Positions 4,025 through 27,020 of a DNA stretch of 64,000 nucleotides are shown here, one piece after another. The notes beneath the pieces were generated by a model, which saw only the letters and a program-made list of their open reading frames with translations, was not told the DNA's origin and made no database searches. The translations under genes were made by a program, and so were the position numbers. The first letter of the stretch is position 1. The number at the start of each line of letters is the position of its first letter. The DNA comes from Ascidiella aspersa (lineage: Eukaryota), in the NCBI GenBank assembly GCA_963924565.1, contig OZ004607.1:29450001-29514000 (forward strand), read 5' to 3'.

Positions 4025-7000
4025 ATGATGAAGATTATGTTCTTTCTTATGGGGTTTCTCGCATCTTCGCAAGCCTGGGAGATATTATCAGGTAGGCTTG
4101 TATACATAAAGCAGGGAAAGGCTGTATAGTGTTAGTAACCACCCGGTAATAAAGTAAAATTAACCTTTAAGTACAAATATGTGACCGTGTGTTCAACAGT
4201 TGAAAAATGCGCGTTTTTTTATAAAATACTCTGATAAATACATGTAGTTCTGCCGTTAGTTGTTGATCGTGCATCTTTTAGTAAACAAACATTTTATCTA
4301 CGATTAGAGCATCGAACGGCTTTTAATTGTGACCACAATCCTTGCTCACACCGCTGCGTTGAATTCCCTGGAGGATTCAACTGCGAATGCCCGAAAAGCC
4401 ACTATCTTGACCCTGATGACCAATCCACTTGCTTACCATTCGCTATACAAGGTACGGCACAACTAAATTAAATGAGCAAACTCAAAGCTCTGTGTTAAAT
4501 AAATTTGTAAGTATAGCAGCTATTGAGCTTATTTTGGAAAACATTACTTAAAGTACGGGTTTCGAAACTTTTAGGGCTTACACTACCCCTAGAAATAATA
4601 AATAAAAGGCGGTACCCCTACTGGAACTTTTGTTAAGAGGTTTAGTATTATTTCTCTATAAAAAGAACATTAACAGCACTATTAACTGTGTATAATATAC
4701 GAAAATATAATTAGATTTTATGTACTTTAATAATAATCAGTGGGGCCTACACAAAGGACTTTATGACGAAGCTGGATCAATACAAAGAAAATCATATTCT
4801 TGAAGAATCCCAGATATCAATCAGCTACCTGAGTATTCGAAATGGCACCCTGGCTGGGAATCACTGACTTATATTTCATGGCATATTCAAAAATTATAAA
4901 TATCAACATTCGGTCTTCATTACCCTTAAACATCGATCCTTTAAAATTAAAACCAAGGGCTCGTATTTCGTTTTAAAGCAGTTTGTCGTATTTTGTGTAA
5001 GAATTGCACTAGCAAACTACAAACGTATGTTTTTTTAGTAAGAATTAGGCTTTAAAATTGACGGGACAACCTTTTTTTCAGGATTTTAATTTGTTGCTAG
5101 TTGAATATTTGTTGTATTTAACGTCTATGAGACCAAACACTTTTGGTGACGCTGTCCGTAAAATAAATCCCGGATAATATAAAGTCTGCTCAAGGTAAAA
5201 TCCCCAAGATAGTCAGTCTGTTTAAGTTTACATTCAAGGTTTAAAGTATGGTCGAAGGCATATTTACCGTGATTGTTTAAGGTAGTCTGCATTACACCTT
5301 TTTCCATTAGATACTGCTTGTAACAAGGCAAACTGCTCCCAAGACTGTGTAACCTACAGGGATGACTTCTTCTGCGAGTGCTGGGACTCCTACTACATTG
5401 CTGATGACTACGCGACATGTGTGGTTCGTCCTTCAGGTAACTTTGAAAAGGGCAACATCTACCCTATAGGGCCTAGGCGTATTTATTATCCAATGTTCGA
5501 AAACTTAAAAAATAAATGCATTTCACGACAGATTAAAGTTGTCACTATACGCTGTATGTAAACATTGCGTACAAAAGTCATTAAAACAAACTTTTGGCTT
5601 AAAGTTCTATAAATATTTGGAGATCTTGTGCAAAAATATGATTAGGAAATTACGAGCCTCGTGTTTTATCGAAGTCTTCAATGAAAGCAAACTTGGAAAT
5701 TATCTACATTTAAATAATTTAAATGGATTGTTTTATCCCGATTAAAATAAGGAATTGCAAAATTGCCTGTCGAAAAAGTAAACCGAAACATCGCGTAATA
5801 AATTGGATAGAGGGGTGAGCGCTCTTTCTTGTACAACCTACAATTGGGGTAATTTTATTATATTTTGACAAGTATTTGATCCTATTTAGAGGCCGACTGC
5901 CCGCATGATTTCTGGCCTTACGGCCACAGCTGCATGGCTTCCACCTACAATGCCTTATCTTACGCCGGTTCAAAGGCAGCTTGTAGACTCTTGGGCGGTC
6001 GTCTTGTAAAGATCCAGGACCAGGGAGTCAGGAGAATCGTCGCGCGCTATTTTGGATCCAAAATATGGATTGGTAAGATTGAAATTTGCCGCTTGGATCC
6101 AGCGTCCAAATGTAGCCTCGTCAATATCGAAGTCGATTTAAAAAGAAAAAAAGACAAGGACGTCTTTAAAAGTGGCCATCATAATCACATTGTAAAGGTT
6201 TATTTTTTGCAATAAATTGCGATATTTTCTATTTAATACAGAGTGAATCCTGCAAAAAAAATGTTTAGAAAAGTTGTGAAGTTCCGTTAAACTTTTAAAA
6301 TTATTTTCAGAAGATATATAGGGTTTCGTTAATTTGTTTTTGCCAGAGCTGGTATTGTCTGGTTTTGTCTCGTTGGTGACCGTTCACTATAGTTTTGTTT
6401 TTTGAAAAACCGGCACCTATATAAAAAAAAAAGCTTAATATAATCCCGCAACAGATATGCTGTTTGTCGCACCCAAAGCAACCAGAACGCTCTTTCGCAT
6501 CTGACAGGGGTCAGCGATCGCGCGGGCGACGGTTCATTTGCCCACTCGGACGGAAGTCAGGTCAATTACGTCAATGGATGGGCTACCGGTCATCCGGAAC
6601 GCAACGGTTGCGGCTACATTTCAGACGGCAAACTCTATACTGGTGATTGCAAGAACAACTTGACGGCCGTCTGCGAAATCCGTGAGTATATTTCTTTCGG
6701 GGTTTAACGGAAAACACACACTTTTTATATAAAGCGATGGCTTGAGATGGCCAGAAAGTACCAAGTTCTGTTTTAGTTTGACAAAGCAACCGAATTGCAT
6801 GTTTATTGCGTCATTTTAAACAATACATTACGGGAATGTTATTATGTTTATTATTCACGAATATATAATGTTTAAATTCAACGATTAAAAAAGAATTCCC
6901 TATCTCGAACTTAGAAACAAATTTTCGTTGTGAAATACATCTTATTGACACGTATCCTTGACATGATACGCTCCATAAATAATTATTATACAGTGATACA

Positions 7001-7985
7001 ATAGCAGTGCTACAACATATTTTTTTGTTCAGCTCGTGCTACGGGTTTCGCCTTATTTTCCAACCGCCTCAGCTGGGAAGAGGTACACGGAACGCTTTAC
7101 TTTCCCACTGATGTGAACGCCGTTCTCGTCACATTTCCACAACCGGTTAAAGAATTTTATGTGAGTACATAGGCCTACATTCCGTCAGCTTGATCTCGTA
7201 TTCTAAGAGGACACACTTAAAGTTTGCATAAATGCTTTTCAGCGAATCGAACGTTCTGCTCGGCAGTGTATAGTCCCCGACACTTTATGATCATTTGCCG
7301 AAAACATTTGACACAGTGCTAAATAGCTATATGTTTCCTTGTTTGTCCATAAGCTTTTGTCGTAGGTAATATTGTAATAAGGCCTAAATGAAGTTTATTT
7401 CAGTAATATTTTGCGCTTTTAAAGATGACAAAGGTCCGCTTTTCCATCTTTAACGAAACAAATGGTTCGGAACAATCCTTTCACTCCTTTGTGGCAAACA
7501 GCTAATAGAAAACACCCGATTTTAATCGCGCCACTTGTGCACGAATTTAGCATATGCTAATTTTGCCTAAAGAGTTTTGATTTTAAAAGATACCTCAGTA
7601 TCTCCTCGAACATAGCTAGATGGATTCACTTAAGGCTATATTTAACCCACATTACTCAGCCCGATTGGTGGTTATACAACATATCGACAGCTGGTTGATA
7701 CGATGTGTTCTGAAGAAACCACCATATGCTCGTCTAGTTTTGGTTCTGAACAATATGATTAGGTTACTAAACAGCTGATATAATACGTTGATATAATAAA
7801 CAACATAATTTTGTGTGCAGGCCTGGTTCTCCAGTGTTGCTGCAAGGTTATCCAGCAGCCAATATGTGGTGAAGCAAAACGACATCGAACGTCAGTTTGG
7901 CAAAGGCCAGGGAAAGTTTGTTATCGAAATGGGTGACAGTCGTTTCCCAGATTACAAAATTGCCGTAACCGCCTATGCTGCGTGA
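4025..7985 (+). CDS. Secreted protein: signal peptide-EGF-EGF-C-type lectin domain-unassigned C-terminal domain (CBM2-like?), copy 1, 328 aa
   Basis: Seven phase-compatible GT-AG exons: 4025-4091 (MMKIMFFLMGFLASSQAW), 4308-4451 (CDHNPCSHRCVEFPGGFNCECP...C), 5311-5436 (CNKANCSQDC...CEC...C), 5890-6072 (CPHDFWPYGHSC...KIWIG), 6508-6681 (VSDRAGDGSF...W...C...DC...VCEI), 7033-7160 and 7821-7985. Total 987 nt, open throughout. AATAAA at 8154. Confidence 0.88.
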
Positions 7986-8442
7986 ATATCAAAAGCATTT
8001 GTTGTCTGTGATTTACTTTTGATCAATTAAAATTTATGGCAAAAAGGCCGCAAGTTCATTATCTGGCTAAAATCTGTGTGGATCACATTAAGCTTTGTAA
8101 AATCGATTTTATTTATTTTGCAATATTTTTTGACAAACACGTAATTTTTGTGTAATAAATAAAGCTTTATTGAGTGTTATTGGGCATCAATCGTTACTAA
8201 GCTTTCCCCGAAAAAACAAACTTGAGAAGAAGCTTACAAGGCAATATAGAAGTGTCTTAACTTGAGTTTGAAGTTCGTCTATTAATTAATTTTATAGGAA
8301 TTTAGGATGACATATTACAATAACTTGATAAATAAAATCCAGTCAACACAGTGGAAATCTTGAAAATATAAGTGAAAACTGTGTGGAAAATAAATTTATA
8401 AACAATTGGACCCTAGTTTGCTTTTGTAAATATTTTTAGGAT

Positions 8443-10557
8443 TCACTCATAAATAAACGAAATGTCTAGGCCCTGCAGTGTTTTGTCGACATTTCGATTT
8501 ATCACATCGGAATGAGCAACCGTCAGGCATTTAATTTTTGCTAATAGTTAAACTTTGTGTAAACGTTGACTCAACTAGCGAATGTTCCATGAAATGGCAT
8601 TATATAGTTTGCCAACTTTTGACGAAAATATTAAACATCAAAAACTTGTGATGAATTCGAATTTTTATTTTGAGAAATTCAGCAATTTCGAGCCAAGTTT
8701 GCCAAAATTAAAAGACATTTTGACTTTGGGAAATTAATATTTTCCTATAATAAAAATGGGTCTACTCTAAAATTTACTTTTAACAGTTTGTATACCCTTA
8801 ATTGAATGACCAATAAGGTCATGAATTTTTCTTGTTTGTCGGTTGTAAATAATTTTTAGCTGCAACATTTATCATAAGAGGCCTTCTAAATGGAGCTTTG
8901 GTTTCTATAGTTTAGGTCTTCTGACGTATGTTGGCATTTTTTAATTTTTTTTTCGCGCTGTTGCTCTCTAGAATAAGGCGATAGTCATACTCAACCTTAA
9001 CGGCATATAGAAACTCGGCAAAGGAGTAATAAAAGTTTGTTATACCTTTGCGAAACATATTGGCGAATTCCTCGTTGTCGTTTGTCGCCGCTTTTTTCAT
9101 CGTATCGAAAGTGCAGTTGTTGCAAATCTTCTCCAAGTTGTCGTTGTCGACCTGAACACCAATAAACTCGGCGATCTTTCTGACTTCTTGGCGTAAATTC
9201 TGAAAGACATGCTCGGTAAACAAGAGTATTAATAAATTAGTTATACAGGCCATATATTTTTTTTATCTATGTAGCAATAGAAGGTAGTTTTCTTGCTTCA
9301 CTGCCTTGCCCAACTTTACGTCAATATACACGTGACCACTAACAAGTGACCAACGCCCAAGCGAGTGGAAAGGGGGTTTCGCGAATTCATACTAGGCTAC
9401 TTTACGCTACTCAGCGTGTTACGTAGTCGTGTATACTGACGTTTGTAAATATACTTAACGAGCAATTTTAACTAAGTGAAGTGATTCTGTCCAGAGTTCA
9501 AAAGTTAAGGACAGTTATATTAGCGGCCTGTTCCTTGGAGTCAGATTTATAAAAAGAAACGTGTTTGAGACTTATGCCGCCGTCGGCCCTTGTCTCAAGG
9601 GCCAGCGCCTTTATACCCGTGGCAACCACCAACACTAAAATCTTTCATGTGATATTTGGTTATTTATGTCTTGTCTACAAGATTCGCAACATTAGGTTTA
9701 CAAATCATTATTGTTCCATCAACTTACTCCTTTCATCTCTTCATACACAAGAAACAAAACGTTTTTGTCGTCCTTATGTTGATGCCAAGCTTTGATGTGC
9801 TCCAGGTACCCCTCGACATCTTTACCGAAACATCCTTGTTTACCTTTGATATATAATATACATATCCTGAGTTTTAAGTTCATCCGTTATGTCACCAATC
9901 TGAACTATACACTACCAGCGATATGAACATCGTAAAACTCCTTTTCCGATTTCGGAAATAAATTACACACGTCATTTTTGACGAAGTTGTACCACGAAAC
10001 CAACTGATCTTTAGGGTTGCGATACACGTACAAAGTCTAAACCAAAAATAAGTAATTTATCAAATATTTATATTTGTATGACATTTTAGGGGCATTTTGG
10101 TCCATACATTATATTGTCACCATTGTATGTAAGTAATTTTGTGATAGATTGCAACACCAAACAAAGTAACCTTTGTGTTGTTTTGTCTTAACTTGTCCAT
10201 GTTCACAAGGTTTGGTGGTAGATGAGTGCAAAAAAACCTTCGCAGCCACGCCAAGTTTTCAGTAACTTGATACTTGGAAACTGTAAACAATAATATGAAA
10301 TAACATTGCTCCAAAAATGACTTTTTACCCAAGTGGTCATTGTTAAGCGCGCTTGTGGCTGCTGGAGCACAGCCTAATTTTCTATTTGTAAAGAAACCTA
10401 TTGCTTTCTTGTAGGTTGCTGAGTAAAAGCAATGTTGACTTACCTGGTCCGAACTCCAAGTAGGAGAACATCTGTGTTATCTTTTTTGTCTTTTCAAGCG
10501 TCTCCTTGTCCTTGTAGTAAAGCAGGTTCCGCCCAATTTCAGTCGTTCAAGTTGTAC
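8443..10557 (-). pseudogene. Sulfotransferase pseudogene (exons 2-7)
   Basis: Exons at 10557-10444, 10280-10171, 10036-9916, 9843-9728 and 9199-9046. GTTW is mutated to GTT-stop (TGA at 10549-10547). The last exon (~8529-8443, LTVAHSDVINRNVDKTLQGLDISFIYE*) has lost its acceptor and the GKIGSWKD codons. Exon 1 is absent. Confidence 0.9.
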
Positions 10558-13421: not shown

Positions 13422-16400
13422 ATGATGCAGATTATGTTCTTTCTTATGGGGTTTCTCGCATCTTCGCAAGCCTGGATGCTAGTATCAGGTAGGCTTGTAT
13501 ACATAAAGCAGGAAAAGTCTGTATAGTGTTAGTAACCATCCGGTAATAAAGTAAAATTAACCTTTAAGAATAAATATGTGACCGTGTGTTCAACAGTTGA
13601 AAAATGCGCGTTTTTTTATAAAATACTCTGATAAATACATGTAGTTCTGCCGTTAGTTGTTGATCGTGCATCGTTTAGTAAACAAACATTTTATCTACGA
13701 TTAGAGCATCCAACGGCTTTTAATTGTGACCACAATCCTTGCTCACACCGCTGCGTTGAATTCCCTGGAGGATTCTACTGCGAATGCCCGAAAAGCCACT
13801 ACCTTGACCCTTATGACCAATTCAATTGCTTACCATTCGCTATACAAGGTACGGCACAACTAAATTAAATGAGCAAACTCAAAGCTCTATGTTAAATAAA
13901 TTTGTAAGTATAGCAGCTATTGAGCTTATTTTGGAAAACATTACTTAAAGTACGGGTTTCGAAACTTTTAGGGCTTACACTACCCCTAGAAACAATAAAT
14001 AAAAGGCGGTACCCCTACTGGAACTTTTGTTAAGAGGTTTAGTATTATTTCACTATAAAAAGAACTTTAACAGCACTATTAACTGTGTATAATATACGAA
14101 ACCATAATTATATTTTATGTACTTTAATAATAATCAGTGGGGCCTACACAAAGGACTTTATCACGAAGCTTGATCAATACAAAGAAAATCATATTCTTGT
14201 AAAATCCCAGATATCAATCAGCTACCTGAGTATTAGAAATGGCACCCTGCCTGGGAATCACTGACTTATATTTCATGGCATATTCAAAAATTATAAATAT
14301 CAACATTCGGTCTTCATTACCCTTAAACATCGATCCTTTAAAATTAAAACCAAGGGCTCTTAAAGCAGTTTGTCGTATTTTGTGTAAGAATTGCACTAGC
14401 AAACTACAAACGTATGTTTTTTTAGTAAGAATTAGGCTTTAAAATTGACGGGACAACCTTTTTTTCAGGATTTTAATTTGTTGCTAGTTGAATATTTGTT
14501 TTATTTAACGTCTATGTGACCAAACACTTTTGGTGACGCTATCCGTAAAATAAATCCCGGATAATATAAAGTCTGCTCAAGGTAAAATCCCCAAGATAGC
14601 CAGTCTGTTTAAGTTTACATTCAAGGTTTAAAGTATGGTCGAAGGCATATTTACCGTGATTGTTTAAGGTAGTCTGCATTACACCTTTTTCCATTAGATA
14701 CTGCTTGTAACAAGGCAAACTGCTCCCAAGACTGTGTAACCTACAGGGATGATTTCTTCTGCGAGTGCTGGGACTCCTACTACATTGCTGATGACTACGC
14801 GACATGTGTGGTTCGTCCTTCAGGTAACTTTGAAAAGGGCAACATCTACCCTATAGGGCCTAGGCGTATTTATTATCCAATGTTCGAAAACTTAAAAAAT
14901 AAATGCATTTCACGACAGATTAAAGTTGTCACTATACGCTGTATGTAAACATTGCCTACAAAAGCCATTAAAACAAACTTTTGGCTTAAAGTTCTATAAA
15001 TATTTGGAGATCTTGTGCAAAAATATGATTAGGAAATTACGAGCCTCGTGATTTATCGAAGTCTTCAATGAAAGCAAACTTGGAGATTATCTACATTTAA
15101 ATGATTTAAATGGATTGTTTTATCCCGATTAAAATAAGGAATTGCAAAATTGCCTGTCGAAAAAGTAAACCGAAACATCGCGTAATAAATTGGATAGAGG
15201 GGTGAGCGCTCTTTCTTGTACAACCTACAATTGGGGTAATTTTATTATATTTTGACAAGTATTTGATCCTATTTAGAGGCCGACTGCCCGCATGATTTCT
15301 GGCCTTACGGCCACAGCTGCATGGCTTCCACCTACAATGCCTTATCTTACGCCGGTTCAAAGGCAGCTTGTAGACTCTTGGGCGGTCGCCTTGTAAAGAT
15401 CCAGGACCAGGGAGTCAGAAGAATCGTCGCGCGCTATTTTGGATCCAAAATATGGATTGGTAAGATTGGAATTTTCCGCTTGGATCCAGCGTCCAAATGT
15501 AGCCTCGTCAATATCGAAGTCGATTTAAAAAGAAAAAAATACAAGGACGTTTTTTAAAAGTGGCCATAATAATCACATTGTAAAGGTTTATTTTTTGCAA
15601 TAAATTGCGATATTTTCTATTTAATACAGAGTGAATCCTGCAAAAAAAATGTTTAGAAAAGTTGTGAAGTTCCGTTAAACTTTTAAAATTATTTTCAGAA
15701 GATATATAGGGTTTCGTTAATTTGTTTTTGCCTGAGCTGGTATTGTCTGGTTTTGTCTCGTTGGTGACCGTTCACTATAGTTTTGTTTTTTGAAAAACCG
15801 GCACCTATATAAAAAAAAAGCTTAATATAATCCCGCAACAGATATGCTGTTTGTCGCACCCAAAGCAACCAGAACGCTCTTTCGCATCTGACAGGTGTCA
15901 GCGATCGCGCGGGCGACGGTTCATTTGCCCACTCGGACGGAAGTCAGGTCACTTACGTCGATGGATGGGCGACCGGTCATCCGGAACGCAACGGTTGCGG
16001 CTACATCTCAGACGGCAAACTCTATACTGGTGATTGCAAGAACAACTTGACGGCCGTCTGCGAAATCCGTGAGTATATTTCTTTCGGGGTTTAACGGAAA
16101 ACACACACTTTTTATATAAAGCGATGGCTTGAGATGGCCAAAAAGTACCAAGTTCTGTTTTAGTTTGACAAAGCAACCGAATTGCATGTTGATTGCGTCA
16201 TTTTTAACTATACATTACGGGAATGTTATTATGTTTATTATTCACGAATATATAATGTTTAAATTCAACGATTAAAAAAGAAATCCCTAGCTCGAACTTA
16301 GAAACAAATTTTCGTTGTGAAATACGTCTTATTGACACGTATCCTTTACATGATACGCTCCATAAATAATTATTATACAGTGATACAATAGCAGTGCTAC

Positions 16401-17372
16401 AACATATTTTTTTGTTCAGCTCGTGCTACGGGTTTCGCCTTATTTTCCAACCGCCTCAGCTGGGAAGAGGTACACGGAACGCTTTACTTTCCTACTGATG
16501 TGAACGCCGTTCTCGTCACATTTCCACAACCGGTTAAAGAATTTTATGTGAGTATATAGGCCTACATTCCGTCAGCTTGATCTCGTATTCTAAGAGGACA
16601 CACTTAAAGTTTGCATAAATGCTTTTCAGCGAATCGAACGTTCTGCTCGGCAGTGTATAGTCCCCGACACTTTATGATCATTTGCCGAAAACATTTGACA
16701 CAGTGCTAAATAACTGTATGTTTCCTTGTTTGTCCATAAGCTTTAGTCGCGGGTAATATTATAATAAGGCCTAAATGAAGTTTATTTCAGTAATATTTTG
16801 CGCTTTTAAAGATGACAAAGGTCCGCTTTTCCATCTTTAACGAAACAAATGGTTCGGAACAATCCTTTCACTCCTTTGTGGCAAACAGCTAATAGAAAAC
16901 ACCCGATTTTAATCGCGCCACTTGTGCACGAATTTAGCATATGCTAATTTTGCCTAAAGAGTTTTGATTTTAAAAGATACCTCAGTATCTCCTCGAACAT
17001 AGCTAGATGGATTCACTTAAGGCTATATTTAACCCACATTACTCAGCCCGATTGGTGGTTATACAACATATCGACAGCTGGTTGATACGATGTGTTCTGA
17101 AGAAACCACCATATGCTCATCTAGTTTTGTTTCTGAACAATATGATTAGGTTACTGAACAACTGATATAATACGTTGATATAATAAACAACATAATTTTG
17201 TGTGCAGGCCTGGTTCTCCAGTGTTGCTGCAAGGTTATCCAGCAGCCAATATGTGGTGAAGCAAAACGACATCGAACGTCAGTTTGGCAAAGGCCAGGGA
17301 AAGTTTGTTATCGAAATGGGTGACAGTCGTTTCCCAGATTACAAAATTGCCGTAACCGCCTATGCTGCGTGA
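13422..17372 (+). CDS. Secreted EGF-EGF-C-type lectin-(CBM2-like) protein, copy 2, 328 aa
   Basis: Exons at 13422-13488, 13705-13848, 14698-14823, 15277-15459, 15895-16068, 16420-16547 and 17208-17372. Exon lengths match copy 1 and the frame is open. Confidence 0.88.
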
Positions 17373-21255: not shown

Positions 21256-24200
21256 ATGATGCAGATTATGTTCTTTCTTATGGGGTTTCTCGCATCTTCG
21301 CAAGCCTGGGAACTGTTATCAGGTAAGCTTGTATACATAAAGCAGGGAAAGGCTGTATAGTGTTAGTAACCACCCGGTAATAAAGTAAAATTACCCTTTA
21401 AGAATAAATATGTGACCGTGTGTTCAACAGTTGAAAAATGCGCGTTTTTTTATAAAATACTCTGATAAATACATGTAGTTCTGCCGTTAGTTGTTGATCG
21501 TGCATCGTTTAGTAAACAAACATTTTATCTACGATTAGAGCATCCAACGGTTTTTAATTGTGACCACAATCCTTGCTCACACCGCTGCGTTGAATTCCCT
21601 GGAGGATTCTACTGCGAATGCCCGAAAAGCCACTACCTTGACCCTGATGACCCTAACCAATCCACTTGCTTGCCATTCCTTATACAAGGTACGGCACAAC
21701 TAAATTAAATGAGCAAACTCAAAGCTCTATGTTAAATAAATTTGTAAGTATAGCAGCTATTGAGCTTATTTTGGAAAACATTACTTAAAGTACGGGTTTC
21801 GAAACTTTTAGGGCTTACACTACCCCTAGAAATAATAAATAAAAGGCGGTACCCCTACTGGAACTTTTGTTAAGAGGTTTAGTATTATTTCACTATAAAA
21901 AGAACTTTAACAGCACTATTAACTGTGTATAATATACGAAAATATAATTATATTTTATGTATAATTATATTTTATGAATAATAATCAGTTGGGCCTACAC
22001 AAAGGACTTTATCACGAAGCTGGATCAATACAAAGAAAATCATATTCTTGAAAAATCCCAGATATCAATCAGCTACCTGAGTATTCGAAATGGCACCCTG
22101 GCTGGGAATCACTGACTTACATTTCATGGCATATTCAAAAATTATAAATATCAACATTCGGTCTTCATTACCCTTAAACATCGATCCTTTAAAATTAAAA
22201 CCAAGGGCTCGTATTTCGTTTTAAAGCAGTTTGTCGTATTTTGTGTAAGAATTGCACTAGCAAACTACAAACGTATGTTTTTTCAGTGAGAATTAGGCTT
22301 TAAAATTGACGGGACAACCTTTCTTTCAGGATTTTAATTTGTTGCTGGTTGGATATTTGTTGTATTTAACGTCTTCGAGACCAAACGCTTTTGGTGACGC
22401 TGTCCGTAAAATAAATGCCGATAATATAAAGTCTGCTCAAGGTAAAATCCCGACAAAATACAGTAGGCTCAAGATAAAATTCCCATGGTAGGCAGTCTGT
22501 TTAAGTTTGCATTCAAAGTTTAAAGTATGGTCGAAGGCATATTTACCGTGATTGTTTAAGGTAGTCTGCATTACACCTTTTTCCATTAGAAACTGCTTGT
22601 AACAAGGCAAACTGCTCCCAAGACTGTGTAACCTACAGGGATGATTTCTTCTGCGAGTGCTCGGAGTCCTACTACATTGCTGATGACTACGCGACATGTG
22701 TGGGTCGTCCTTCAGGTAACTTTGAAATGGGCAACATCTACCCTATAGGGCCTAGGCGTATTTATTATCCAATGTTCGAAAACTTAAAAAATAAATGCAC
22801 ACTATATGCTGTGTGTAAACATTGCGTACAAAAGTCATTAAAACAAACTTTTGGCTTGAAATTCTTTTAATTTTTGGAGATCTTGTGCAAAAAAAATTTG
22901 ATTAGGAAATTATGAGCCCCATGTTTTATCGAAGTCTTCAATGAAAGAAAAGCTTGAAAATTATCTACATTTAAATGATTTGAATGGATTGTTTTATCCT
23001 GATTAATATAAGGAATTGCAAACCGTTGCGAGTTATGTTTTCCTGTCGAAAAATTAAACTGAAACATCGCGTAACAGATTGGATAGAGGGGTGAGCGCTC
23101 TTTCTTGTACAACCTACAATTGGGGTAATTTTAAACCGCATGTTATATTATGACAAGCATTTGGTCCTATTTAGAGGCCGACTGCCCGGAAGGGTTCTGG
23201 CCTTACGGCCACAGCTGCATGGCTTCCACAAACAAGTCCACATCTTACGCCGGTTCAAAGGCAGCTTGTAGAGTCTTGGGCGGTCGTCTTGTAAAGATCC
23301 AGGACCAGGGAGTCAGGAGAATCGTCACGCGCTATTTTGGATCCAAAATATGGATTGGTAAGATTGAAATTTGCCGCTTGGCACCAGCGTCCAAATGTAG
23401 CCTCAATATCGAAGTCAATTTTATAAAGAAAAAAATACAAGGACATCTTTAAAAGTGGCCATAATAATCACATTGTAAAGGTTTATTTTTTGCAATAAAT
23501 TGCGATATTTGCTATTTAATATAGAATAAATCCTGCAAAAAAAATGTTTAGAAAAGTTGTGAAGTTCCGTTAAACTTTTAAAATTATTTTCAGAAGATAT
23601 ATAGGGTTTCGTTAATTTGTTTTTGCCAGAGCTGGTATTGTCTGGTTTTGTCTTGTTGGTGACAGTTCACTATAATGTTCTTGTTTTTTTTTGAAAAACC
23701 GGCACCTATATAAAAAAAGCTTAATATAATCCCGCAACTGATATAGGCTGTTTGTCGCACCCAAATCCATTAGCACGCTCTTTCGCATCTGACAGGGGTC
23801 AGCGATCGCGCGGGCGACGGTTCATTTGCCCACTCGGACGGAAGTCAAGTCACTTACGTCGATGGATGGGCGACCGGTCATCCGGAACGCGACGGTTGCG
23901 GCTACATTTCAGACCGCAAACTTTTTACTGGTGATTGCAAGAACAACTTTACTGCCGTGTGCGAAATCCGTGAGTATGTTTCTTTCGGGTTTTAACGGAA
24001 AACACACAGTTTTTATATAAAGCGATGGCTTGAGATGGCCAGAAAGTACCAAGTGCTGTTTTAGTTTGACAAAGCAACCGAATTGCATGTTGATTGCGTC
24101 ATTTTTAACTATACATTACGGGAATGTTATTATGTTTAATGTTCACGAATATATAATGTTTAAATTCAACGATTAAAATTTAGAAACAAATTTTCGTAGG

Positions 24201-25254
24201 AAAATACATCTTATTGACACGTATCATTTACATGGCACGCACCATAAATAATTATTATACAGTGATACAATAGCAGTGATACAACATATTTTTGTTCAGC
24301 TCGTGCTACGGGTTCGCCGTGTTTTCCAACCACTATGGCTGGGAAAAGATACACGGAACGCTTTACTTTCCCACTGACGTGAACGCCGTTCTCGTCACAT
24401 TTCCTCAACCGGTTAAAGAATTTTATGTGAGTATATAGGCCTACATTCCGTCAGCTTGATCTCGTATTCTAAGAGGACACACTTAAAGTTTACATAAATG
24501 CTTTTCAGCGAATCGAACGTTCTGCTCGGCAGTGTATAGTCCCCGACACTTTATGATCATTTGCCGAAAACATTTGACACAGTGCTAAATAACTATATGT
24601 TTCCTTGTTTGTCCATAAGCTTTTGTCGTAGGTAATATTATAATAAGGCCTAAATGAAGTTTAATTCAGTAATATTTTGCGCTTTTAAAGATGACAAAGG
24701 TCCGCTTTTGCATCCTTAACCGAACAAATGGTTCGGAACAATCCTTTCACTCCTTTGTGGCAAACAGCTAATGGAAAACACCCGATTTAAATCGCACTTC
24801 GTACTTGTGCACGAATTTAGCATATGCTAATTTTGCCTAAAGAGTTTAGATTTTAAAAGATACCTCAGTATCTCCTCGAACATAGCTAAATGGATTCAAT
24901 TAAGGCTATATTTAACCCACATTACTCAGCCCGATTGGTGGTTATACAACATATCGACAGCTGGTTGATACGATGTGTTCTGATGAAACCACCATATGCT
25001 CATCTAGTTTTTGTTCTGAACAATATGATTAGGTTACTAAACAACTGATATAATACGTTGATAAATAAACAACATAATTTTGTGTGCAGGCCTGGTTCTC
25101 CAGTGTTGCTGCAAGGTTATCCAGCAGCCAATATGTGGTGAAGCAAAACGACATCGAACGTCAGTTTGGCAAAGGCCAGGGAAAGTTTGTTATCGAAATG
25201 GGTGACAGTCGATTCCCAGATTACAAAGTTGTCGTAACCGCCTATGCTGCGTGA
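21256..25254 (+). pseudogene. EGF-EGF-C-type lectin gene copy 3 with a 1-nt deletion in exon 6 (truncated allele, pseudogene or assembly error)
   Basis: Exons at 21256-21322, 21539-21688 (+6 nt), 22590-22715, 23175-23357, 23796-23969, 24300-24426 (127 nt versus 128) and 25090-25254. GGTTTCGCC becomes GGTTCGCC at ~24313, giving TGA at 24380-24382. Confidence 0.8.
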
Positions 25255-27020
25255 ATCTCAAATGCATCTGTTTTTGTCTGTGTTTTACTTTGGAAAAATA
25301 AAATTTATGGCTAATAGGCCGCAAGTTCACTATCTGGCTAAACTGTGAATCACACTCAGCTTTGTAAAATTGATTTTATTTATTTTGCAATATTGGTTGA
25401 CCAACACGTAGTTTTGCAGTCTAATAAATAAAGCTGTGCATTGAGTTTTATTGGGCATCATTTGATACTAAGCTTTTCCTGGAAAAGCAAACTTGAAAGG
25501 AAGCTTACTTGAACTTTTACAAATCAATATAGAAGTGTCTTAACTTGAGTTTGAAGTTCGTCTATTATTTAATTTTATTGACTTGGATTTTGAGATGACA
25601 TATTACAATAACTTAAAAACACGGTGGAAATCTTGAAAATATAAGTAAGAACAGTGTGAAAATAAATTTATAAACAATTGCACTCTCGTTTGCTTTTGTA
25701 AATAGTGTTTACACTTTACTCATAAATAAATGAAATGTCCAGGCCTTGCAGTGTTTTTTCAACATTTCGATCTATCAGGTCAGATTGAGCAACCGTTAGG
25801 CGATCCTTCCAAGATCCAATTTTACCTACAGTTAAATGGAAGAATACCTTTATCTCATTGCATTAAATTTTTGCTAATAGTTTAACTTTGTGTAAATGTT
25901 GACTCAACTAGCGAATGTTCCATGAAATGGCATTTTATAGTTTGCCAACGTGTGACGAAAATATTAAACTTCGAAAACTTGTGATGAATTCGAATATTTA
26001 TTTTTGGAAATTCAGCAATTTCGAGCCAAGTTTGCCAAAATTAAAAGAAGTTTTGACCTTGGAAATTAATATTTTCCTATATTAAAAATGAGTCTACTTA
26101 AAATTTATTTTTAACAGTTTGTATACCGCTTATTTAAATGACCAATAAGGTCATGAATTTGGCTTGTTTGTCGGTTGTAAATAATTTTTAGCTGCAACAT
26201 TTATCATAAGAGGCCGACTAAATGGATCTTTGGTTTCTATAGTTTAGGTCTTCTGACGTATGTTGGCATTTTTTAATTTTTTTTTTTCGCGCTGTTGCTC
26301 TCTAGAACAAGGCGATAGTCATACTCAACCTTAACGGCATATAGAAACTCGGCAAAGGAGTAATAAAAGTTCGTTATACCTTTGCGAAACAAATCGGCGA
26401 ATTCCTCGTTGTCGTTTGTCGCCGCTTTTTTCATCGTATCGAAAGTGCAGTTGTTGCAAATCTTCTCCAAGTTGTCGTTGTCGACCTGAACACCAATAAA
26501 CTCGGCGATTTTTCTGACTTCTTGACGTAAATTCTGAAAACATGCTCGGTGAATAAAATTACTTAACTTAGTTGTACAGGACATATGTTATACAAAATTA
26601 TGCTTTCCTTCGCTTTAATTGACTTGTCTTGCTTTGTTTAATTCACTTCACCTCGCCTCGCTTTGTTCGTTCTGTTACCTTTCTACTTTTGCAATTTCCA
26701 CTTATTACCACTAATTGCTTACCTTTGTTTTAATGCCAAAGGGCAATTCCATAGTTTCAATTCAACAACCGCTGAAACTAAAGAACCCCGGCAGTCTGGT
26801 TGTGAGCGTGGCGTGTTATACCGTAGTTGTTTTTATGAGGAAGCAAGCGAGCTAGCCTACGCCCTAGCCGCTGTGCGACAGATTTAGCTTAATGATGGCG
26901 ATCGCGCCACATGCCATTCTGTTAATAATAAATACTACCGGTTAACTTTAGTGCGGCAGCCGATCAGTGACAGGCCGTTAAGCAGTGAATAAGATATGGC
27001 GCAACACATATACCATATTT

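Follow-up and report, generated by a model that had tools for sequence, protein, structure and literature searches.

The window analysed here, i.e. the whole 64,000-nucleotide stretch of Ascidiella aspersa DNA, carries a tandemly amplified gene for a secreted modular protein that ends in a 97-aa tail of a newly delimited family. We propose that the product is a matrix protein whose tail, with a predicted CBM2 fold, may bind insoluble polysaccharide, most likely the cellulose of the tunic, and we put this forward tentatively, with a confidence a little short of even. Tunicates build a cellulose tunic and are, to our knowledge, the only animals that make cellulose. Besides the synthase CesA, GH6-1 and a few epidermal proteins are known to take part in this process, and the literature searched yielded no matrix protein of the tunicates themselves that binds cellulose. 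The results bear on the way in which tunicates build cellulose, a polymer of bacterial type, into the extracellular matrix of an animal, and the tail, of ~95 aa and with two Trp, provides a concrete candidate.

Gene structure and domain organization

The gene (4025-7985, plus strand, as are all window features given with coordinates below) consists of seven exons with AG/GT borders, which join into a single open frame of 987 nt encoding 328 aa. This agrees with the earlier note, made from the sequence alone, in which a clean seven-exon gene overlooked by the ORF track was described; its absence from that track is explained because every exon peptide is of 60 aa or less. Exons 2-6 each begin in phase 1, and the intron inside the tail is of phase 0. 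The encoded order is a signal peptide, two EGF-like modules, a C-type lectin-like domain (CTLD) and the 97-aa tail (residues 232-328), in which direct reading found zero Cys, so that the Cys-free domain of ~97 aa attributed in the note to the last two exons also stands.

Exon 1 (4025-4091) contains, by reading and translation, the start codon and a signal peptide (22 aa plus a split codon) with a hydrophobic core followed by S-Q-A, and is followed by a GT donor at 4092. EGF-like module 1 is encoded by exon 2 (4308-4451, phase 1-1, AG/GT borders), with six Cys and Pfam scores of 21.5 bits for EGF (PF00008), which equals the cut-off, and 25.2 bits for FXa_inhibition, which is under the cut-off of that profile. 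Exon 3 (5311-5436, phase 1-1), 42% identical to exon 2, encodes module 2, with six Cys by reading and with scores under the cut-off for both FXa_inhibition (21.3 bits) and EGF (15 bits). The assignment of both modules as EGF-like (PF00008 / PF14670) is borderline by score, and is backed by the six-Cys pattern in the two exons and by the strong scores of their relatives.

The two halves of a long-form CTLD are encoded by exon 4 (5890-6072), which has Cys C0, C0' and C1 and ends in W-I-G, and by exon 5 (6508-6681), which has C2, C3 and C4. With the Pfam Lectin_C profile (cut-off 22.6 bits), the N-terminal half in exon 4 matched positions 3-44 with 15.4 bits and the C-terminal half in exon 5 matched positions 49-106 with 24.6 bits, while the full CTLD of the homologue P0006 scored 36.2 bits over positions 3-107. 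The HMM match and the six Cys identify the domain as a C-type lectin-like domain (PF00059) of the long form. The motifs EPN or QPD, together with WND, are the Ca2+/sugar-binding motifs that make a CTLD a lectin. By direct reading, these canonical motifs are absent from exon 5, where H-P-E and Y-T-G-D are found instead, and the family copies on contig C5, as well as P0008, have Q-P-G at the EPN/QPD site. This absence tempers the description of the protein as a lectin in the earlier note.

Exon 6 (7033-7160) encodes the first half of the tail, corresponding to strands 1-4 of the structural models described below, with Trp246 (codon 7074-7076) and an F-P pair. The second half and the stop codon are in exon 7 (7821-7985), where Trp276 (codon 7824-7826) is the second residue and the conserved motifs Q-N-D-I-E-R and R-F-P-D-Y are found. 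Two overlapping AATAAA (8154-8163), ~170 nt past the stop, constitute by direct reading a candidate polyadenylation signal.

Support from RNA is thin: the single run available for the species gave 10 reads on the gene. Sense-side reads were located over exons 1-4, and further reads, in the opposite orientation, in intron 2; this run, with its 10 reads, gave none over exons 5-7 and no splice joint above the listing threshold. In exon 1, the first mate of the reads lies on the minus strand, and the reads bear letters of paralogue or allele type.

Tandem array

Four tandem copies of the gene were identified, three of them within the window (starts 4025, 13422 and 21256) and the fourth (copy 0, L011) just upstream. 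The units of the array, of ~7.8-9.4 kb, are 90-98% identical, and because this identity is uniform over exons, introns and spacers the copies can be regarded as recent segmental duplicates, in line with the amplification that had been claimed for the locus. Copy 2 (13422-17372) is intact, encodes 328 aa with the same exon plan as copy 1 and shows 97.4% nucleotide identity to it, introns included. Copy 3 (21256-25254) is the most diverged, with about 90-96% nucleotide identity, and its exon 6 carries a 1-nt deletion that shifts the frame beyond the canonical acceptor and leads to a stop 26 codons later. Copies 0, 1 and 2 each retain an open frame, together with canonical splice sites and the two Trp.

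The tail family

The exon-7 half-profile of the tail was searched against a library of 1.84 billion proteins, which yielded 16 matches. Half of them (8/16) hold the tail in one matched stretch, and five of these eight are spliced proteins with EGF/VWA/CTLD domains ahead of the tail. Members of the family were found at seven loci of the genome, in Ciona savignyi as H2Y970, which is one of the matches above, and among metatranscriptome proteins of marine origin, a few of which have the order VWA-EGF-CTLD-tail; the tails align with 38-62% identity. A homologous C-terminal tail directly after a CTLD or EGF domain was found in H2Y970, P0006, P0008 and P0010-P0012, with exon-7 profile hits at E 6e-13 to 2e-4, and the junction C-E-x-P/R-R-x-x-G after the last CTLD Cys is common to the window gene and its relatives. 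One locus in the genome is colinear with P0008 (819 aa, EGF-Ly6-like-VWA-EGF-CTLD-tail) and in another an EGF module is joined straight to the tail, which indicates that the tail is used as a module in its own right. VWA-EGF-CTLD-tail, as in the long form on contig C5, is the ancestral form. Thus, the EGF-EGF-CTLD-tail architecture initially described is correct for the window gene, but the family is wider, with VWA-EGF-CTLD-tail as its long form.

In the sole named database relative, H2Y970 (P0003, 'VWFA domain-containing protein'), EGF and VWA domains precede the second tail half (64.6 bits), with which the protein ends. It differs in that its gene model passes from the VWA domain straight to this half, with the CTLD and the first half missing, probably through a prediction gap; its tail is unannotated. 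Word-based protein searches with three tails as query returned near-identical metatranscriptome proteins only, and a scan of metagenome loci added one further locus. No bacterial relatives of the tail were confirmed in 185,579 genomes with a pattern-seeded search, of a kind that misses distant kin, and no description of the domain was found in the literature searched on CBM2 and cellulose-binding proteins in tunicates.

Within the family, divergence is greatest in the window copies, which lack both the W-x-x-G-A-Q-G turn and the internal Cys pair that canonical relatives have at W-F-C and G-x-C-E-F. With the family profile, exon 7 of the window gene scored 45.4 bits and exon 6 only 26 bits, compared with 51-55 bits for the C5 copies, and the identity between the window exon 6 and the modelled homologue is 40%.

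Predicted fold of the tail and sequence comparison with CBM2

Two homologous tails, taken from contigs of spliced transcripts (L012 and L013, with a mutual identity of 45%), were modelled with AlphaFold2, reaching pLDDT 92.0 and pTM 0.81 in model 1 and pLDDT 87.2 and pTM 0.77 in model 2. When model 1 was used in Foldseek, ranks 1-10 were occupied by chains of CBM2 modules or of chitinases, among them 6qfs, 1e5b (TM 0.66/0.68), 3ndy, 6bt9, 1xbd, 6f7e, 2cwr and 1heh. Both models were also compared with 48,161 PDB chains using VIA-align, an aligner independent of Foldseek, and chains of CBM2 modules or chitinases filled ranks 1-5 and 1-8, respectively. The best match for both models was the CBM2b of C. 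fimi, 2xbd (Z 9.7, rmsd 2.2 and 2.1 Å over 82 and 81 of 87 residues), a score modestly above the stated background of this aligner, where Z 7-8 is typical for models without a true match. It was followed by 3ndy (Z 8.0 / 8.3), 6f7e, 6bt9 and 1exg, and the first unrelated fold appeared at Z 6.9 / 6.4. In the models, a short helix lies between strand 6 and strand 7. The comparison by AlphaFold and Foldseek, suggested in the note for residues 232-328 of the window gene and made here on homologous tails, gave a CBM2-like match, and a CBM2-like beta-sandwich is supported for the tail at fold level only, as a prediction from these homologues.

The resemblance to CBM2 had been noticed by eye, and the predicted fold of the two homologous tails is in agreement with it, but sequence comparisons (Pfam, PDB and hhalign) are not. 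Exons 6 and 7 had no Pfam match of any kind at E <= 10. The CBM_2 profile (PF00553, 24-bit cut-off), which scores 110 bits on bacterial CBM2 modules used as positive control, had no match at E <= 10 in four full homologous tails, none at E <= 1 in full-length relatives and zero at E <= 10 in the whole genome. A sequence profile search of the PDB with the tail gave no match, and hhalign comparisons (local, global and greedy) of the tail alignments with 14 Pfam-confirmed actinobacterial CBM2 modules gave probabilities of 0.06-0.11 and E values of 0.5-0.9. The best local hhalign alignment, which is non-significant, places W13 of the tail on the W of W-x-G-G-F in CBM2, matches F-P with F-P and sets W44 against the second conserved W, resulting in the pattern W...G, F-P and W nine residues past P. 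The pattern pointed out by eye in the earlier note corresponds to this sole local alignment with CBM2, which has probability 0.06 and E 0.76. The two Trp (246 and 276 in copy 1) form a near-invariant pair, kept in all family members but one C5 copy; in the models, one is located at the end of strand 1 and the other at the end of strand 4, with the same nine-residue P-to-W spacing as in CBM2. The terminal disulfide and the third Trp of CBM2, which were already described as not evident, are both absent: the window tail has 0 Cys, and C1 and C100 are invariant in the bacterial controls.

Proposed role and alternative explanations

We propose that the gene encodes a secreted, modular extracellular-matrix protein, with the two EGF-like modules as spacers, in which the last Cys of the CTLD is directly followed by the 97-aa C-terminal tail, a predicted beta-sandwich of CBM2 fold. 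The ligand of the tail would be an insoluble polysaccharide, likeliest the cellulose microfibrils of the tunic, with chitin as the main alternative, and contact would take place through the face bearing the two conserved Trp (246, 276), which we infer to be an exposed aromatic face. The EGF/CTLD part (VWA-EGF-CTLD in the C5 long form) could engage other matrix or cell-surface partners, and the net effect would be the coupling of cellulose to the animal matrix. Sugar binding and a location in the tunic are presumed in this proposal; the diverged window copies may still retain polysaccharide binding, and the expression 'cellulose-anchored lectin' is used here as a hypothesis.

The tail might instead be a generic small beta-sandwich devoted to protein contact or oligomerisation, with a convergent or topological likeness to CBM2 and no polysaccharide bound. 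We consider this rather unlikely, since two search methods (with two models in the case of VIA-align) rank CBM2/chitinase chains first over the whole domain, the near-invariant Trp pair shows the P-to-W spacing of CBM2, and the family has so far been found only in a cellulose-making lineage. It would, however, fit with the lack of a sequence-level relation to CBM2, with a Z of 9.7 that is just ~2 units over the background stated for the aligner, with the presence of cohesins, mu-homology domains and viral P domains next, at Z 5-7, and with an internal Cys pair and a Q-x-D-I-E-R helix that have no CBM2 counterpart. If the tail does bind a glycan, this could be chitin or a soluble/sulfated glycan and not cellulose, for example in the chitin-based gut membrane of Ciona. 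The top structures include chitin-binding CBM2 or chitinase chains (2cwr, 2rtt, 5dhe, 5xsv, 6bt9, 8ose), the best match is a xylan-binding CBM2b and a chitin-framed gut membrane is reported for basal chordates (PMC6109156); yet the fold alone does not fix specificity between ligands, and the chances of this alternative seem small to us.

A different explanation concerns the window copies themselves, which could be decaying young duplicates with a non-functional tail, or a gene that is barely expressed, the C5 long form being the only one that matters. The 90-98% identity of the four C1 copies, introns included, the frameshift in the tail of copy 3, the loss of the G-A-Q-G turn and the Cys pair in the C1 tails, with their low score in the family profile, and the count of 10 RNA reads would all be expected in that case. 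On the other hand, the preservation of the frame, of canonical splice sites and of the Trp pair in copies 0, 1 and 2, together with some sense-orientation reads over exons 1-4, speak against decay, and we regard it as unlikely. An H-type lectin-like tail was considered too and is disfavoured, to the point of being nearly negligible: H_lectin clusters appeared at 0.78-0.79 in an ESM Atlas feature search, but these values fall within the range of shuffled proteins, there was no Pfam match to PF09458 and no H-type lectin was present among the structural-search matches listed.

Returning to the preferred reading of a polysaccharide-binding matrix protein, the genome contains a GH6 match above the cut-off, as expected for the tunicate cellulose synthase locus. 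It is conceivable, albeit doubtful at present, that CBM2-fold modules exon-shuffled onto VWA/EGF/CTLD proteins act as the missing adaptor by which the protein matrix of the tunic is tied to microfibrils of cellulose. The module could then have come from bacteria, as a second contribution next to the cellulose synthase/GH6 genes, and have diverged past sequence recognition. If binding is true, a defined gene family would be linked to tunic architecture, a cellulose tag of natural animal origin would be available and the extent of horizontal transfer in the tunic toolkit would be reopened for discussion. Even without binding, this is an unannotated, confidently folding domain family that merits a Pfam entry.

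Comparison with known systems

The house proteins of Oikopleura (oikosins) are tunicate-specific secreted matrix proteins made of EGF, VWA and C-lectin modules, and for oik30e the authors suggest that contact with the cellulose scaffold may be made by its C-lectin domain (PMC3390340). The tail family resembles them in its EGF/VWA/C-lectin modules, and differs in the tail, as no CBM2-like tail is described for oikosins in that report (PMC3390340).

The closest structure to the tail is CBM2b, represented by the internal xylan-binding domain of Cellulomonas fimi xylanase D / Xyn11A (2xbd, 1xbd; R262G mutant 1e5b). Both have a length of ~90 aa and two, not three, conserved Trp. The identity is, however, 10-16%, with no Pfam or hhalign signal; the tail is devoid of the terminal disulfide and has a helix between strands 6 and 7, and its canonical members have an internal Cys pair. 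In addition, CBM2b is joined to a glycoside hydrolase, whereas the tail is fused to animal EGF/CTLD/VWA domains. CBM2 modules have an exposed aromatic strip, with three Trp in CBM2a and two in CBM2b. The first Trp of the tail (model residue 12) would align to CBM2b residue 259, presuming that residue 1 lies on 248 and that the stretch is gapless; residues 259 and 291 are said, in the work of Simpson et al. from 1999/2000, to be the ligand Trp of CBM2b.

With CBM2a (C. fimi Cex 1exg/6qfs, ScLPMO10C 6f7e, C. cellulovorans EngD 3ndy; PF00553) the tail shares the predicted beta-sandwich (Z 7.0-8.3) and a local pattern formed by W, G at +3, F-P and W nine past P, the Gly being present in canonical family members and absent in the window copies. 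The third binding Trp with its loop and the N-to-C disulfide are missing from the tail, and sequence similarity is at chance level.

True CBM2 modules occur in animals in the GH9 cellulases of molluscs and the GH5 cellulases of plant-parasitic nematodes. These proteins have in common with the one described here a CBM2-type module in a secreted animal protein, but their modules can be recognised from the sequence and belong to cellulases for the digestion of foreign cellulose, whereas the tail is unrecognisable by sequence and is attached to matrix-type domains in a host that makes its own cellulose.

Gene structure and expression

Copy 1 of the gene (window 4025-7985, + strand) has seven exons (4025-4091, 4308-4451, 5311-5436, 5890-6072, 6508-6681, 7033-7160 and 7821-7985), with AG/GT at all internal borders and a single open frame of 987 nt when summed, coding for 328 aa. 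The gene structure described in an earlier note, including the fact that the ORF track missed it, is right in all checkable particulars; the exon peptides are all ≤60 aa, so a bacterial-style ORF list gives mere fragments of the gene. Exons 2 to 6 start in phase 1, which makes the EGF exons symmetric 1-1 modules, and a phase 0 intron lies within the tail. The N-terminus reads as a putative signal peptide. In Pfam scans run separately on each exon, exon 2 was EGF-like (PF00008, 21.5 bits, equal to the cut-off), exon 3 gave a weaker EGF-like match under the cut-off, and exon 4 matched the first half of Lectin_C (profile positions 3-44) and exon 5 the second (49-106; 24.6 bits for a cut-off of 22.6), while no match at E ≤ 10 was found for exons 6 and 7. 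These two exons encode the tail (residues 232-328), which contains no cysteine, as had been noticed. The C-type lectin-like domain (CTLD) is of the long form, with six Cys, but its sugar motifs are replaced by H-P-E at the EPN/QPD site (Q-P-G in the relatives on the second contig, C5, and in the long-form ones) and by Y-T-G-D at the WND site, and judging from these residues it should be called lectin-like and not a lectin proper.

RNA evidence came from the sole RNA run of the species, 6% of which was read. Ten reads were found at the gene, part of them falling on exons 1-4 and oriented as a transcript from the + strand would be; none of the ten covered exons 5-7 and no splice joint rose above the listing threshold. 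Others of the ten, in intron 2 (window 4959-5232, depth about 2), have their mates oriented the other way round from those on the exons, and may derive from an antisense or repeat-derived transcript. In exon 1 (window 4031 and 4079-4085), five letters agree with the sister copies instead of with the window sequence (e.g. K3Q), both in RNA reads and in DNA contigs of two other samples. They are typical of sister copies or of another allele, and the member being transcribed, or else the common allele, may differ from the exact window copy. In spliced transcript contigs of relatives, the CTLD passes after its last Cys directly into the tail, which continues unbroken through the exon 6/7 position; this homology indirectly suggests that exons 6-7 would be spliced to the CTLD exons here as well.

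A recent tandem array

Using the exon peptides as tblastn queries, three copies were located within the window (starts at 4025, 13422 and 21256), and a fourth (L011) lies directly upstream of it, which bears out the earlier description of the gene as amplified. The repeat unit spans ~7.8-9.4 kb and identity is 90-98%, equally in exons, introns and spacers; the units are therefore recent segmental duplicates, and resemblance among copies is uninformative on selection. Copy 2 is intact (328 aa). Exon 6 of copy 3 (window 24299-24427) lacks one nucleotide of a T run (g-g-g-t-t-c versus g-g-g-t-t-t-c in copy 1), resulting in a frameshift past the canonical acceptor and a stop 26 codons downstream. 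Copy 3 would thus be a pseudogene or a tail-less variant encoding an EGF-EGF-CTLD protein, and the deletion may also be a sequencing error. Each unit also carries, on the opposite strand, a Sulfotransfer_1 exon (PF00685, 42.9 bits, profile positions 158-229; window 8915-9253, - strand, with a twin at 26273-26584, - strand), so a sulfotransferase gene or fragment has been co-amplified with the lectin-like gene.

The tail defines a small family

Exon 7 and full-tail profile searches of the 308.6 Mb genome returned exactly seven tail loci, four on the contig of the window (C1, where the window occupies 29,450,001-29,514,000) and three on C5. Run against 1.84 billion representative proteins, the exon-7 profile gave 16 matches, in eight of which the tail lies in one matched stretch; multi-stretch matches among the others look like chance likeness to repeats. 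Spliced proteins in which EGF, VWA or CTLD domains precede the tail account for five of the eight, with architectures that include CTLD-tail (P0006), VWA-EGF x3-CTLD-tail (P0011, P0012) and, in the 819-aa P0008, signal-EGFs-Ly6/uPAR-like-VWA-EGFs-CTLD-tail, the Ly6-like part being assigned by reading. The sole named member is Ciona savignyi H2Y970, a "VWFA domain-containing protein", and the rest come from marine metatranscriptomes.

The three members on C5 (22,589,000-22,620,500, - strand; L008, L009, L010, L140) differ in organization. The exons of one are colinear with those of P0008 (EGFs, Ly6/uPAR-like, VWA, EGFs, CTLD, tail), so the long form is also present in this genome. Another joins an EGF exon straight to the tail without a CTLD, which identifies the tail as an independent, shuffled module, and the third has EGF, CTLD and tail, the last interrupted by a 4.4-kb intron. 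Further EGF-rich exons lie upstream of these loci (L140, L141). A Glyco_hydro_6 match is also found on C5 (19,613,851-19,614,090, + strand; L019), with 28.1 bits, over the Pfam cut-off, as expected for tunicate cellulose synthase/GH6 genes; this match and the Ciona relative fit a tunicate host.

Family invariants include G5, F9, W13, G16-A-Q-G19, F34-P35, W44, C46, C72 and F83-x-D-Y86. The C1 copies, copy 1 included, keep both Trp (residues 246 and 276 in copy 1) and F-P, have lost both Cys, and carry W-E-E-V-H-G in place of W-x-x-G-A-Q-G. On the family profile their exon 6 reaches 26 bits where the C5 copies have 51-55, and they are derived, the fastest-diverged members of the family.

Predicted fold and relation to CBM2

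Two homologous tails, whole in uninterrupted transcript contigs, were modelled with AlphaFold2 from a 15-row alignment: L012:326-598 (pLDDT 92.0, pTM 0.81) and L013:2355-2627 (pLDDT 87.2, pTM 0.77). The two share 45% identity, and 40-44% with the window exons, and both models show eight strands and one short helix. A Foldseek search of the PDB with the L012 model gave no match at E ≤ 1e-3, and its ten top ranks contained only CBM2-module or chitinase chains: Cex CBM2a (6qfs, E 2.3e-3), Xyn10A CBM2b (1e5b, TM 0.66/0.68, rmsd 3.0 Å), EngD (3ndy), chitinase ChiA74 (6bt9), 1xbd, ScLPMO10C (6f7e), the P. furiosus chitin-binding domain (2cwr) and 1heh, with 1exg and 2rtt coming after them. In VIA-align, which is independent of Foldseek and compared each model with 48,161 chains, C. 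fimi CBM2b (2xbd) headed both lists (Z 9.7; rmsd 2.2 and 2.1 Å over 82 and 81 of 87 residues), followed among CBM2 and chitinase chains by 3ndy (Z 8.0 and 8.3 for the L012 and L013 models), 6f7e (7.5 and 7.6), 6bt9 (7.3 and 7.5) and 1exg (7.2 and 7.0); the top clearly unrelated fold reached 6.9 and 6.4. Since background often reaches a best Z of 7-8, by the program's own warning, 9.7 is a moderate signal, short of overwhelming. The stronger argument is the coherence of the match list over the full domain, with two methods and, under VIA-align, two models, and from these homologues a CBM2-like fold is predicted for the tail. The H-type lectin suggested by ESM Atlas was rejected, since the Atlas scores are at noise level and no such lectin is among the rows listed by Foldseek or VIA-align.

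For comparison by sequence, 14 actinobacterial modules were found in genomes by a short motif pattern, all of them Pfam CBM_2 (~110 bits). With hhalign the tail matched CBM2 profiles no better than by chance (probability 0.06-0.11, E 0.5-0.9). The one local alignment, at this same chance level, pairs W13 with the W of W-x-G-G-F, G16 with its second G, F-P with F-P and W44 with the next conserved W, and the P-to-W spacing is nine residues in both. This is the register of the CBM2 pattern earlier recognized by eye, which also agrees with the predicted fold; membership in the CBM2 family, with such E values, is not shown by sequence. In the 2xbd alignment range, model residue 1 falls on chain residue 248, and given a gapless stretch the first tail Trp would fall on residue 259, which we take to be a ligand Trp. 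Trp register and 2xbd numbering are suggestive of CBM2 descent, short of proof. A pattern-seeded scan of 185,579 prokaryotic genomes yielded no relatives of the tail, and the PF00553 profile had no match in this genome.

Discussion

We propose that the protein acts as a secreted matrix adaptor, in which the CBM2-fold module at the C-terminus would hold cellulose microfibrils, or chitin, via a putative two-Trp face; further partners in the matrix or at the cell surface would be bound by the EGF/CTLD part and, in the long form, by VWA too. An adaptor with a polysaccharide-binding tail is the best reading, tentatively held, and the predicted fold and the Trp register point to it. The same fold could also serve as a sugar-blind beta-sandwich for protein contacts, as the chance-level profile scores would allow; the two near-invariant Trp, with the P-to-W spacing of CBM2, sit less easily with this option, which we consider unlikely but worth keeping in mind. 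That the ligand is a polysaccharide other than cellulose seems distinctly improbable; chitinase chains figure among the structural matches, next to cellulose-related modules such as that of Cex.

A further explanation, in which just the window copies are duplicates in decay, overlaps with the others because it is about these copies, family aside. The frameshift in copy 3 and the fast divergence on C1 speak for it and the open frames of copies 1 and 2 against it, and on balance it is rather doubtful.

The literature searched, on CBM2 and cellulose binding in tunicates, carbohydrate-binding modules in Ciona and the tunic proteome, gave no report of a tunicate matrix protein that is CBM2-like or binds cellulose. 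The tail family is not among the eight gene groups that a survey of 2026 lists as horizontally acquired in Ciona, and in Oikopleura contact of a C-lectin domain with house cellulose was merely speculated (PMC3390340). What would be new here is a predicted CBM2-fold module, unrecognisable by sequence, in an animal matrix context, and its main interest is that the tie between tunic cellulose and matrix becomes directly testable with a 95-aa construct.

The two Trp aligned with those of the tail are two of the three ligand-stacking residues in CBM2a (Cex), and the only ones in CBM2b (Xyn11A). The tail lacks the terminal disulfide of CBM2a and its third Trp, so the caveat originally attached to the CBM2 likeness was justified. 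The internal Cys pair and the helix of the tail family are foreign to CBM2.
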